A stretch of DNA of 64,000 nucleotides from Mantamonas sphyraenae STR306 (taxonomy: Eukaryota; Protista; CRuMs): positions 324,072-388,071 of the forward strand of contig JAPMXV010000006.1 in assembly GCA_026936335.1 (NCBI GenBank). Reading direction: 5' to 3'. A program made the translations under genes and the position numbers. This document shows, piece after piece, positions 38,918-56,994 of this stretch; position 1 is the stretch's first letter; each line of letters starts with the position of its first letter. The notes below the pieces were generated by a model that made no database searches, had not been told where the DNA came from, and saw nothing but the letters and a program-made list of their open reading frames with translations.

Positions 38918-40213
38918 ATGGACGAGTTTTTTGATGCCATTGAAGATGGGGATTTGGGGACAGTGGAGGCAATGGTGGAGAAGGGAGCAGATGTGCATGG
39001 GGTGAGGGCAGGCGGGTGGACGGCGTTGATGGTGGCCGCAAGGGAAGGGCAGGTGGAGGTGTTGGAGTGGTTGCTTGATCGAGGTGTGGATGTCCATGCT
39101 CGCACGGAAACAGCGCTGTGGACGGCATTGATGATTGGGGCAATGGAGGGGCATGTCAAGGTTGTGGAGAGGTTGGTCGGGGCAGGGTCGCAGCTGGAGG
39201 CGAGGAGCAGGCAGGGGAAAACGGCGTTGCTGGTGGCTGCAGCACAGGGCAGGGCAGGTGTGGTTGCGGCGTTGGTGGGCCACGGTGCACGTTTGGAAGC
39301 GCAGGACGCAGACGGGAAGACGGCATTGGTGGCAGGTGTGCGGTCTGTGGAGGTGACGAGAGTGTTGGTGGAGAATGGGGCGGAGGTTGGGACGGCGGCA
39401 GCGGCAGCGGCGGCGGTGAATGGGTTTGTGGCGTCGTTGGAGGTGTTGGTTGGTGCAGGGGCGGATGTGTGGCTGGCTGTGATGGCTGCAGTGGACTATG
39501 CGCGGAGCGAGGTGGTGCGGGAGGTGGTGGAGTGGGGGATTGGGAGGAATATGGACGTGAACCGGGTGGATGAGGAGAGAGGAAGGACGCTGCTTTTGGC
39601 AGCAGCACGTGTGGGCGAGGCAGCGTCGATGGAGATGCTGCTGGAGGCTGGAGCAGATTGTGGGGTGCGGGATGCGAGGGGGAACACGGCGCTGCATCTG
39701 GCTGTGGATGCAGACAAGGGAGCACAGGGGCCGCTGGTGCTGCTGAGGTATGGGGCAGAAGTGGATGCAAAGAACAAGGCGAGGTTCACGCCGCTGGCGC
39801 GGGCGGTGATGTTCCAGAGCTTGGCGTGCACGAGAGCGTTGGTGGAAGCCGGCGCGGATCTGGAGGTGCACATGGACGGCCTGGGGCGCACACCGTTGAT
39901 GTATGCCGCGAGGCAGTGGAGGAGTGAGGTGGTGTGCGAGCTGGTGGAGGCCGGGGCGAACGTGCAGGTGCGAGATGTGAACGGGGTCACGCCGCTCATC
40001 GCGAGCTGCGGAACAGGGTGCACGGTCAAGACAGAGAGGCTTTTGCGTGCTGGCGCGGACGTGTTTGTGTGTGGAGATGATGGGAGGACGGCGCTGGATG
40101 TTGCTGTGGAGAGTGGGAATTTGGAGCGGGTGTGGCTGTTGGTGGACAGCGGGGCGGATGTGAACTCGGTGAGGGATCGGAGGGAGTTGATGGAGGAGTT
40201 GGGAGGGGGATGA
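38918..40213 (+). CDS. Ankyrin-repeat protein (~12 repeats)
   Basis: Repeated G.TALMxAA..G...VV..LL..GADV units across the whole length. Confidence 0.92.
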   Translation: MDEFFDAIEDGDLGTVEAMVEKGADVHGVRAGGWTALMVAAREGQVEVLEWLLDRGVDVHARTETALWTALMIGAMEGHVKVVERLVGAGSQLEARSRQGKTALLVAAAQGRAGVVAALVGHGARLEAQDADGKTALVAGVRSVEVTRVLVENGAEVGTAAAAAAAVNGFVASLEVLVGAGADVWLAVMAAVDYARSEVVREVVEWGIGRNMDVNRVDEERGRTLLLAAARVGEAASMEMLLEAGADCGVRDARGNTALHLAVDADKGAQGPLVLLRYGAEVDAKNKARFTPLARAVMFQSLACTRALVEAGADLEVHMDGLGRTPLMYAARQWRSEVVCELVEAGANVQVRDVNGVTPLIASCGTGCTVKTERLLRAGADVFVCGDDGRTALDVAVESGNLERVWLLVDSGADVNSVRDRRELMEELGGG

Positions 40214-40304
40214 GAGGGGGTGGGTGTGTGGGGGAGGGGGTTGGGGGGAGGAAGGAGTGGGAGGGAGTGCGCCGGGAAGTCCACAAGAAAGGAGTCATCC
40301 AACA

Positions 40305-53200: not shown

Positions 53201-56200
53201 AGAAGCCCATCACAGAGGGGCAGTGACTGTGTTGCTCAGACACCCTCAGTGTGAATGGTTTGTTACCACAGAGGGTGGACTTACTGCTGTGGATGTGGCC
53301 GTGGATACCGAGAATGTGGACGAGAAGGCGACGCACAGCTGTGTTTTTCCCTCTGCTCCAGTGCGGCGTGGGGTTTGACGATGAGACACTCGGAGGGTGC
53401 AGCATGCTTAAAGAGCTGTGTGAGGGCCGAGGACTTCTCAGATACGCAAAGGAATATGCTCACCGCAAGTTGGGTTGGGTGCAGCAGGCATCCATGCCCT
53501 GGGGTGAATCTGTGGCAAAGGATGTCGTGCAGATGGTGCGTGGGAAGCTGATCAGTGGTTGGTGGAAACGGGAGGGTGGGATGGAGGTGTACTTTGGTCA
53601 GGGCGAGGCCCCTGTGGAGCTCCCCGTGTGTGATGCAACGAGCTCGGAAAAGGAGCTCGCCGACGAGCATGTTGCAATGACCATTGGTCTTTGTTTCCCC
53701 GGATCTGTGACAGGCTGCCATGTTGCACGATTGGAGAACGGGATGCTGCGCATGGATACGGAGGAGGGCGCGAGCAGCGTGCGTGCGTTGAAAATCACGG
53801 TTGCGGAGCATGAGGAATCGACCACCACGGCGATTCCAGACACGCTTGGGGAATGCAACAACCTCAGGATGCTCGACGTGGAAGCATGCGGCGTTGTCAA
53901 AATGCCAGCAGCATTTGGCAACCTGGCTCAGCTGGTGCATCTTTGCACAGCTTCCGACCAGTCTCTGGAAGATGTGCCCGAACATGTCGTGCAGGACAGT
54001 GCTCAACGTGTGGTGAAGTATGTCAAGAACATGAACCACGACTGGAACTGGGTGAATTGGATTGTTCTGGGACATGGTGGCCAGGGCAAAACAACCATCA
54101 TTCGCTCCCTCCGACGCCTGTGCAGCAAGCGCAGCAGTCTCTTTGACGAACCAGAGTACCAAACACTCCACAGCGAGCGAACTACGGATGCTACACACGG
54201 CATGGATGTGTTTGAGTTTGAGATTCGAGCGGAGGAAGACGAGGCGATTGCAGTTCACGTGCGCGTGAGTGACTTTGGGGGCCAGCCGGAATACTGGCTG
54301 GCCCACCAACGCCTGTTGTCTACCATGGGCAGTGCGCAAGTGATTGTGGCGACCCCAATCGTACACGGGGAGGGAGAAGGGAACGATGCAGTGGACTACG
54401 AGCAGGCAAAGGACTCGATGGAATTCTGGCTGGAGCTCGTGTCATCGCGCGTGGACAGTGCAGCATCGAGGGACAAGAAGCCCAAAGTGGTGCTGGTGTT
54501 GACCAAATTGGACCTGGTGCGCCAGTTGCAGGGCCAAACGGAGGAGGCTCGCGAAAAGCTGCAAGAGTGGCGGGAGGAGTGGCAGACGCGGTACAAGACC
54601 GTGGACTTCTTTCATGGGGACGATGGGGTCTTCTTTTTGGATGGCGATTCGTTGCCGTCGCCAGAGACTCTCGCGAGATCAGGCAGCAGCAGCATGGGTC
54701 AGGCACACACGACCGAATTGGAGCGCTTGCGCGCCGCCTTGTCCAGGTACAGCACTGGCGCGCGACGGAAGGTGCCTTTGGCTCAGGTCCGGCTGCAGGA
54801 GCTCGTGCAGAAGCTGCGTGCGACAAGAGGAGCGTTGAACCCATGGACGAGCGTGGACGCGCTGATCCAGGAGGCCAGGGAGGATCCTGAGATCGCGGAG
54901 ATGTACGGACGTCAAGGCCTGGACATGGAGCAGCCTCTGGAGGAACTGCACCATCTGCATGAATTGCTTCTGCATCGACCCAGCCGAACGGTGGTGTTGG
55001 ACGCGCAGTGGTTGGCCAAGCTTGCGGGTGCGTTTGTACACCCACCCGACGCCGTGGCAGAACAGACGAGGCTCAAGCACAAGAGCAAGTCCATCTGCGA
55101 TAAAGTCGACACAAACGGGGTGATGGTTATTGAGGAGGAGACCGAGCGTGCCCTGTGTGCACTGCACGAGGAGCTGCGAAAGACGCAGGTGGACAGCCCG
55201 GACCGAGAAATGGTGTTGCAGGACACTGTGTTGCTGCTTTCACAGTTCCAACAGTTGCAAGGAGCGGGCATCAGCAACGATGAGGCACAAGGCAGGCTGT
55301 GGAGGATTGTGGACATGATGGCGCACAAGTTTGGTTTCGTCGGTGGGCCTGGAGAAGATTCCAGTGTCGAGCCCAGCGATTCCGAAAAGGTGGAAACCAT
55401 CCTGCGGCTGTTGAAGGAGTTTGGCATCTGCCGCATTGACCTCGACGAGACCCGGGTTTATCAGGCGTTCTTCCCCTACCGCAGCCCGGATCTGCAGATG
55501 GAAAAAATTTCGTCTCTCGACGTGCAGAAAATGCCGCGTGTTGTCGCGAGACGGTACTACTGGGCGATTACAGACAATGAGCAGGGCGAGTCTGGGGGAA
55601 GTTTGTCTCCGCAACGCAGCTGGGGACACATTCCACCCGCGATGTTCAACGAACTGCAGTTTGTCTTGCTGGGTGAGGTGAAAAATCACGTAGAGCACTT
55701 GTATGGACTGGATCAAGACGAGAAGGCGCGTGAGGATGCGCGTCAGCGCAAGAAGCCGCCTGTCGCGGCACGCAATGCGTTCTTCCACGTCGTCATGGAA
55801 AAGATGTCGTTGTTGGTGACACACAAGTTGATGACACGACACATTGACGTGGTCGTGTGCGCCCATGATGACTGCGTGCTCAATATCCACCGAACCCTGC
55901 AACGGGTCGAGTCACTGATGCAGTCGCAGATCGACAACGAGCACTTTGGTGGAGTGGGATCCCTCAATTTTGTCCCATTGTGTCCACATTGCGTCAAGCG
56001 GCAACTCGAAGACGTCAATGGCGCAGATCTGCCGCTGCCGGTGTATGACATGGGAGACGAGGTGCGCCACAAGCTGCTGAAGCAGGGGCCGTACGATGAA
56101 TCCATGACAGAGAACCTCATTCAATGCGGTGAGACAAATAAGATGGTTTCTGCACGGGACGCCCTGCTGGGAGACAACGTCGAAGCCGAAGCTGTGCAAA

Positions 56201-56994
56201 GTGGTGGATCATGGGTCGAGCCGATGGATGGATGTGAACTGCAGGTGTTGGCAGTGACAGATCGCGGGGAGGGGATGACTCCACACGCTTGGTTGGAGTT
56301 TGACGCATTGCGGGAGCTGTGCAAAGATGTGGCGTGGTCGGAGAAGGACTCCCGCTCGCGTGACACAGACGTCAAGGAAGTACGCAAGGTTCTGTCCCAA
56401 TCACAGACAAACATGGTACACATTGTGTCGCACATGGACGACGAGGGAATGTGGTGTGCAAAAAGCAAACTTCCGCGGAAGAAATTGCTGCTGAGCATGG
56501 TCCGTGGTGTTGACCATACGCGTGCACTATTGGTGCTCAACGGATGCAACAGTGCGTCTATGGCCAAAGAGGCGGTCTGCAGTGGCATCTTTGCAGCCGC
56601 CATCGGCCACAGCGAACGCGTGCGCGGTGAGGTTGCAACCGCCTTTGCAGACGACTTTTACGGCTCACTGTTGATAGGGCGGGGATCCTTGCGTGCTGCT
56701 TTCGACTACGCAAGGTTAGACTGTCCCTGTGCATGCTTGTATGCACGCAAGGAGGTGTTGGATCGGCAGATGGGCGGGGATTTTTACGCGTCAACAGAGT
56801 GCGAGGAAAGCGATGTGGTGTACATTGGTCCAGCTGGTGCTGGGAAAGGCAAGGAGAAGGTGTCGAATGATGATGAAGCAGGGCCATCTGGAGCAGCAGA
56901 AGGGGGGAGTGGGGAATTGGGTGAGCAGGCCGGGCATCCCAACCGGATCCACACCTATTCCAGGGTGTTGAGCATGGAGTGGGAGTCTGAATGA
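50204..56994 (+). CDS. Giant ROCO protein: unrecognised domain, HTH/LOTUS-like, SAM-like, ankyrin, LRR, ROC GTPase, COR and CHAT protease; intron 51047-51118; apparent extra bases at ~52889 and ~53346
   Basis: ANK repeats (DTLLMLACEHG, GWTAVVFAA, GQTALMMA, GATALHIAA). LRR IPDTLGECNNLRMLDV. ROC motifs GHGGQGKTT, ATHG, DFGGQ and TKLD. COR motifs VVLDAQWL and LCPHC. CHAT motifs MVHIVSH, LVLNGCNS and FADDFY. Confidence 0.85.

Follow-up and report, generated by a model that had tools for sequence, protein, structure and literature searches.

Do the seven genes that stand in a row beside a telomere of the free-living marine CRuMs flagellate Mantamonas sphyraenae (9,416 genes; PMC10492846) act together as one defence or cell-death system, or do they simply share a chromosome end? 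The stretch that raises this question, referred to below as the window, comprises 64,000 nucleotides of strain STR306 (assembly GCA_026936335.1, contig JAPMXV010000006.1, positions 324,072 to 388,071), and forms the right end of the contig that we call C6; the searches covered the whole assembly of 25.06 Mb in 78 contigs. All seven genes lie on the plus strand at window 38918-56994, with stop-to-ATG spacers of 91, 44, 99, 100, 116 and 161 bp, and about 7 kb separate them from the TTAGGG telomere repeats at 63844-64000. An earlier note, made from the letters alone, had described seven consecutive co-directional genes with spacers of about 45-160 bp, and this description holds, the genes being real and the spacers measuring 44-161 bp. 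The note had further proposed a defence or regulated-death locus of all seven genes, which survives in reduced form: linkage recurs for a core of three, namely a HEPN-like gene (gene 2), a caspase gene (gene 3) and a ROCO-CHAT gene (gene 7), for which a defence or cell-death role can reasonably be suggested, and does not recur for the other four. We read the island as a composite, in which a switch fused to a CHAT protease would activate a C14 caspase, the caspase would unlock a latent effector, and the remaining genes would be passengers; we consider this about equally likely to be right or wrong.

Recurrence of the core on two other contigs

The closest paralogue of the caspase is on contig C2, 9 kb from its end; it is 28-36% identical and has an intron that the C6 gene lacks. 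The gene order there is HEPN-like gene, caspase, HEPN-like gene, X-CHAT-NB-ARC-TPR (X being a helical domain treated with gene 7 below), repeat gene, and telomere. Unit 1 of gene 2 is collinear with the downstream HEPN-like gene (27%, z 3.8-5.8), and the knuckle and beta regions of gene 2 align to the upstream, inverted gene (z 4.3-5.8). A profile search of the genome with the HEPN-like module returned four places only, in gene 2 and in the two neighbours of the C2 caspase; these four match their own profile by construction, and what informs is that no others turned up. The earlier note had offered co-occurrence at further chromosome ends as a check on its proposal; it is found at the C2 end for the caspase, the HEPN-like gene and a CHAT-bearing switch, and is missing for the ankyrin, vWA-like, NTPase-nuclease and orphan genes. 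The C6 CHAT retrieves CHATs of ROCO type whereas the C2 CHAT falls in the NLR-type group, so the type of sensor differs while the pairing persists. Only two of the 21 CHAT genes found (a lower bound) sit less than 25 kb from a contig end, and these are the two beside caspases; a random position in the genome lies within 13 kb of a CHAT in 1.7% of cases. Beyond the 21-gene list, an extra CHAT-STAND-type gene with a canonical HYSGHG was seen on C49 (L043 2732-5942); a PF00656 match on that contig belongs to a CHAT-STAND-type gene and was set aside as lying outside the gene 3 family.

A third, distant caspase relative stands on C68 between CHAT-NLR genes and is recognized by three collinear pieces (His motif, Cys motif, and C-terminal domain), with a best E of 2e-4 within the locus (region read, C68:148-158 kb). 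It is placed head-to-head with a different partner, a beta-rich/helical gene (C68:148.6-153.1 kb; L053 586-5084) for which a gasdermin-like label finds no Pfam support, and no HEPN-like module occurs in the 10 kb read. This cluster is interstitial, and CHAT and caspase are paired in it too.

Such linkage could be a matter of history. An ancient block of subtelomeric DNA carrying caspase, HEPN-like and CHAT genes may have been duplicated, in surroundings (subtelomeres and defence-rich regions) that gather genes of this kind, and the products would then work independently. The C6 and C2 clusters do both lie directly inside the same subtelomeric repeat block, domain X is found in both CHAT genes, the mobile NTPase family of gene 5 has landed on C6 as well, and the sample amounts to two or three clusters from a single genome. 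However, the two clusters show no block similarity in their DNA beyond 74 bp at the caspase active site; the pairing has outlasted changes in gene order, orientation, introns and sensor type, with the partner genes on C2 split and one of them inverted; and the interstitial C68 cluster still pairs caspase with CHAT. On this balance, we regard a purely historical linkage as unlikely.

The three core proteins

Gene 3 (43498-45471, plus strand) is intronless and encodes 657 aa, and its identity as a divergent peptidase C14 caspase is well supported by its ESM Atlas features, its alignment and its paralogues. The features score 0.96 against clusters of bacterial caspases 634-757 aa long, all ten top matches belonging to PF00656, and some of the clusters carry DUF4384; the beta-rich C-terminal domains of gene 3 are probably DUF4384/Ig-like. 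Against a bacterial C14 profile, hhalign scored gene 3 at 31.3, the best of 100 shuffles reaching 23.4 (P 0.001), and set its LIAHG and RDSCY in register with FSGHG and LDCC. The catalytic dyad, His113 (43834) and Cys162 (43981), is intact and is kept by the paralogues on C2 and C68. A Pfam search with hidden Markov models (HMMs) did not match gene 3 to PF00656, no other HMM or structure match was obtained, and Foldseek on a single-sequence model of pLDDT 36 gave noise. As a caspase, gene 3 is supported by features and dyad register, and not by profile. A junk repeat, the only external match of a caspase search, was dropped.

Gene 7 (50204-56994, plus strand; predicted intron 51047-51118) encodes, in order, N-terminal orphan domains, domain X (51896-52198), ankyrins, a short LRR, Roc, a COR-like region and a C-terminal CHAT. 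Its frameshifts near 52890 and 53345 are probably assembly errors, like those of gene 2 described below. The CHAT assignment is confirmed by sequence: HIVSH (56419) and LNGC (56536) keep the catalytic His and Cys, with HM rather than HG after the His, and a two-copy CHAT profile searched against the PDB had 8tl0 as its sole match (E 1.8e-7). The entry 8tl0 is probably the SAVED-CHAT structure; its His-Cys spacing of 47 equals that of SAVED-CHAT H375/C422. The ROCO half of the ROCO-CHAT label is supported by Roc motifs (G1 54070, G3 54271, G4 54502), by weak Pfam matches (Roc E 0.05, LRR E 2e-4; none for the COR-like region), and by a family of about 20 paralogous loci, mostly interstitial, several of which have a coiled tail in place of CHAT. 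Domain X is a helical domain of about 100 aa common to the ROCO-CHAT and CHAT-NB-ARC-TPR families (loci L034-L037, L039, L040) at about 30% identity; it looks SAM-like by eye, an assignment that we rejected as lacking Pfam support. The C2 copy of CHAT matches annotated CHAT proteins on plasmids. In the matched region of an Agrobacterium Ti plasmid, four CHAT genes are clustered with a caspase, TIR genes and an S8 peptidase.

Gene 2 (40305-43453, plus strand) is broken by three frameshifts in the assembly. Public sequencing runs were aligned to window 40000-45999. Its GT-AG intron at 40527-40612 is seen spliced in run X3, for which reason this run, labelled 'DNA?', was taken as an RNA run. The reads carry one extra base relative to the assembly at 40417/40420, at 41333 (three runs) and at 42349 (one run shown); the three frameshifts are assembly errors, and since the read-supported insertions restore the frame by frame arithmetic, gene 2 is a single open reading frame of about 1020 aa. 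A pseudogene is thereby ruled out, and the telomere, the introns and the paralogues rule out bacterial contamination.

The gene 2 protein has a CCCH-like finger and two units, each with a HEPN-like helical domain, a CxxC knuckle and a beta-rich domain. Unit 1 contains a Cys-rich insert and the motif RTKTQGH (41290) and unit 2 the motif RNAVHH (42306), while the relatives on C2 have RNKAHAH (minus-strand gene) and RHVEHGH (plus-strand gene). These units follow the pattern Rx4-6H, which is short enough to occur also by chance, and RTKTQGH lacks the usual N, D or H after the R. As in the HEPN superfamily (Swt1/AbiU2/CXorf38-like; PMC3710099), the helical domain ends in Rx4-6H, the R being followed by N in two of the four units, and insertion of a Zn ribbon into HEPN is known from CXorf38 (PMC3710099); the insertion position and the CxxC/beta domains are, in contrast, the family's own, and no profile match rises above cut-off. 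The only profile match to HEPN, HEPN_AbiU2 at E 0.007 for a C2 paralogue, is below the cut-off, and an ESM search with unit 1 gave leads all under 0.9. By their motifs the helical units are likely HEPN; of the CCCH/HEPN-like description given earlier, the finger and the motifs hold up, and a profile or fold match above cut-off has not been found.

The module may be real but wired differently: CHAT could cut the effector directly, as in fungal CHAT-gasdermin pairs, the caspase and its neighbour could be a self-sufficient, Canu-like pair of two genes, or the neighbour could be an RNA sensor or inhibitor rather than an RNase. The caspase and its partner are the tightest pair at all three loci (44 bp apart on C6, with ends overlapping or abutting on C2, and head-to-head on C68), and the motifs RTKTQGH of unit 1 and RHVEHGH on C2 are non-canonical. 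Haplotypes of gene 2 differ at 22 codons (14 non-synonymous, 8 synonymous) and those of the caspase at one, a divergence far above that of the caspase, as might be seen in a recognition protein, although some of the differences may be errors of the assembly and only one run covered the caspase. A CHAT gene is nevertheless present within 13 kb at three of the three caspase loci examined, and the canonical R-N-x-H is kept by unit 2 and by the C2 minus-strand gene. We think such rewiring improbable, and retain the chain from CHAT through caspase to effector.

Neighbouring genes and the chromosome end

Gene 5 (46325-49127, plus strand) encodes a CR (Crinkler/RHS)-like NTPase and restriction endonuclease (REase) with a coiled coil, as read from its motifs: Walker A at 47310, Walker B at 47655, PFADV at 48660 and IQCK at 48717. 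Two predicted introns, 46902-46974 and 46975-47055, abut with no exon between them, and the donor and branch-point motifs of both recur in paralogues. The leader (46325-46520) is rich in R, S and T, with 12 R/K and no D/E in 60 aa, and the paralogues examined (L002-L009) likewise have an R/S/T-rich leader almost free of D/E; by composition it is typical of mitochondrial presequences and suggests a Crinkler-like nuclease family aimed at mitochondria. The family occupies nine other loci, each 4-10 kb from a contig end and all facing inward, with broken copies on C34, C71 and C58; within 1.5-kb flanks, the neighbour is a subtelomeric repeat gene rather than a caspase, HEPN-like or ROCO gene. We judge gene 5 to be a passenger from an independent, dispersed subtelomeric family, because its relatives are scattered and nowhere else beside a caspase. 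In common with CR proteins (PMC5289972), which are known from free-living eukaryotes, it has a P-loop NTPase followed by a restriction-like nuclease, and it is multicopy and subtelomeric as are trypanosome RHS; it differs in having no recognized ubiquitin-like header and in its coiled coil, presequence-like leader and missing sequence match. A seven-sequence profile found no external relatives, described CR proteins included, in searches of limited reach. The NTPase-nuclease call accordingly stands on the Walker A/B and PD-(D/E/Q)xK motifs and is not backed by homology to known CR proteins.

The C2 cluster lacks counterparts of genes 1, 4 and 6. Gene 1 (38918-40213, plus strand) is a stand-alone ankyrin-repeat protein, as had been stated (Pfam Ank_2 E 2e-62), with generic matches alone, at 25-39%, to ANK regions of ROCO paralogues. 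Remnants of a conserved 65-residue tail of a subtelomeric LRR/ANK family lie at 57045-57308 and 59675-60070; gene 1 has no such tail. Gene 4 (45571-46224, plus strand) is a single-copy gene for a 217-aa alpha/beta protein with no paralogue found, vWA- or USP-like by eye. It has no Pfam match at E 10 and no PADLOC match, its NCBIfam match is spurious, and in place of the DxSxS of a MIDAS it has DGSMT only, and the vWA-like call is unconfirmed. Gene 6 (49244-50042, plus strand; in-frame intron 49610-49706 predicted by frame arithmetic) is an orphan with no family match in Pfam or NCBIfam, whose first domain shows a weak resemblance to part of the N-terminus of ROCO (BLASTP E 9e-4, 25% over 99 aa). 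Membership of the module is unproven for the ankyrin, vWA-like and orphan genes.

Genes 2 and 3 of the core are transcribed. Besides the spliced intron of gene 2, one unspliced RNA contig (43516-46024) runs from the caspase past its stop and about 550 nt into gene 4, which may reflect read-through, an overlapping untranslated region or an assembly join. The RNA run also contains 68% of sampled words at 46000-55500, so genes 5-7 are probably transcribed.

Could the seven genes nonetheless be co-regulated as a single operon-like defence system that includes two proteases as well as two nucleases? Shared direction, the RNA words and the contig reaching gene 4 would fit this, as would the C6 NTPase being the sole copy that faces the telomere and the domain weakly shared by genes 6 and 7. 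On the other side, members of the NTPase family are scattered elsewhere without these neighbours and carry a presequence-like leader, genes 1, 4 and 6 are absent from C2, and none of the RNA contigs listed bridges genes 1-2 or 2-3, although such holes prove little. Housekeeping neighbours are, moreover, packed as tightly: the same-strand run extends upstream through Rad17 and a Cpn60/TCP1-like gene (35222-38898, plus strand, outside the module; Pfam Rad17 E 2e-26, Cpn60_TCP1 E 3e-5), separated by about 149 and 19 bp. The co-direction and short spacers behind the term "operon-like" are therefore correct as observations but are background here and do not by themselves mark an operon, and we consider a seven-gene system very improbable.

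Toward the telomere, minus-strand subtelomeric repeat genes and the telomere itself fill 57244-64000; this block is 88-91% identical in DNA to the C2 end and follows the C2 CHAT gene too. The repeat-protein genes (57244-63182) are 80-95% identical across many chromosome ends and have no Pfam match. Elsewhere in the window, an alpha-kinase-like gene was noted at 13761-15860 (Pfam E 1e-4).

Proposed wiring and its known relatives

The cascade proposed for the core would begin at a switch sensor bearing CHAT, which is ANK-LRR-Roc-COR-CHAT on C6 and CHAT-STAND-TPR on C2 and C68. Ligand binding at the repeats would flip the GTPase or ATPase, and oligomerization would render CHAT active as the initiator; CHAT would then cut and activate the C14 caspase as executioner, and the caspase would cut the protein encoded next to it, upon which the two HEPN-like units of that protein would join into a composite RNase site, leading to growth arrest or death of the infected cell. 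Each cleavage, the RNase activity, the trigger and the defence role are what we infer, and this initiator-executioner wiring is proposed because SAVED-CHAT of Haliangium cleaves and activates PCaspase (bioRxiv 10.1101/2023.06.23.546230) and because the Canu caspase, which has an Ig-like tail, activates a pro-nuclease (PMC12799240).

Several observations weigh against it. The window copy of gene 2 has no Pfam HEPN match and its HEPN identity is weak; its AlphaFold model is all-helical and of low confidence, and fold searches gave no HEPN match. Its similarity to the C2 genes is modest (z 4-6). Genes with introns or frameshifts were queried as separate exons or pieces, so the searches with genes 2 and 7 were less sensitive. 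For most CHAT genes, whose count is a lower bound, no caspase was detected in the vicinity. The genome-wide search missed the C68 caspase, so that the family may have further, unlinked members and its counts are incomplete; C68 is a selected case, its region having been chosen beforehand rather than found by genome search. All of this comes from one genome, and searches of external collections returned no relatives of the caspase, of gene 2 (last piece searched) or of the NTPase.

How does the core compare with described systems? As in SAVED-CHAT/PCaspase, a sensor-fused CHAT is clustered with a free C14 caspase, in two clusters per genome with CHATs of different origin. The Mantamonas genes are, however, eukaryotic with introns, use Roc-COR or STAND with ANK/LRR/TPR instead of SAVED and cyclic oligonucleotides, and have a HEPN-like neighbour in place of a sigma factor, inhibitor and kinase, with no CRISPR or CBASS. 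As in Canu, a caspase with a C-terminal fold that is probably Ig-like stands beside a candidate pro-nuclease and TPR-containing neighbours, whereas the Canu nuclease is an MBL-fold DNase and the Mantamonas candidate is HEPN-like with Cys knuckles and accompanied by a second (CHAT) protease. No SAVED/cyclic oligoadenylate (cOA) sensor or MBL nuclease was matched in the island by PADLOC or Pfam; PADLOC on the window was blank, and NCBIfam gave LRR matches only, apart from the spurious one in gene 4. Clusters of protease and effector genes are known from both bacteria and fungi (PMC12642450, PMC8851545). In fungal het-Q1/het-Q2-like gasdermin-protease clusters, a CHAT or NLR-fused protease likewise lies near its substrate, within about 10 kb; there it is mostly one protease per pair with a gasdermin effector, and a separate C14 caspase, ROCO switch and HEPN effector are not described in the excerpted text of that paper (PMC8851545). 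The core is thus not a member of the SAVED-CHAT/PCaspase, Canu or het-Q systems, and may share their working mode.

A wider scheme is possible but doubtful: the switches fused to CHAT, whether ROCO GTPase or STAND NLR, would be interchangeable and would activate a dedicated family of C14 caspases, and the effectors next door would be swappable as well, C6 and C2 having a HEPN RNase in tandem or split form and C68 another kind of protein, perhaps gasdermin-like. All the domain types are known, and what appears new is their combination in a protist; the HEPN survey reports no caspase association, the word 'caspase' being absent from it (PMC3710099), and our literature searches turned up no protist in which a CHAT fused to a ROCO or NLR protein is accompanied by a HEPN-like partner as well as a free C14 caspase.

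If the linkage were merely historical, the island would be an ordinary defence-rich subtelomere. If the proposed cascade is true, enzyme-substrate pairs are named among three proteins, and protease-licensed effector clusters, known from bacteria and fungi, would reach into a deep protist lineage. A ROCO protein would then gain a direct proteolytic output, with an initiator-to-executioner cascade gated by the ROCO GTPase and ending in a HEPN RNase.

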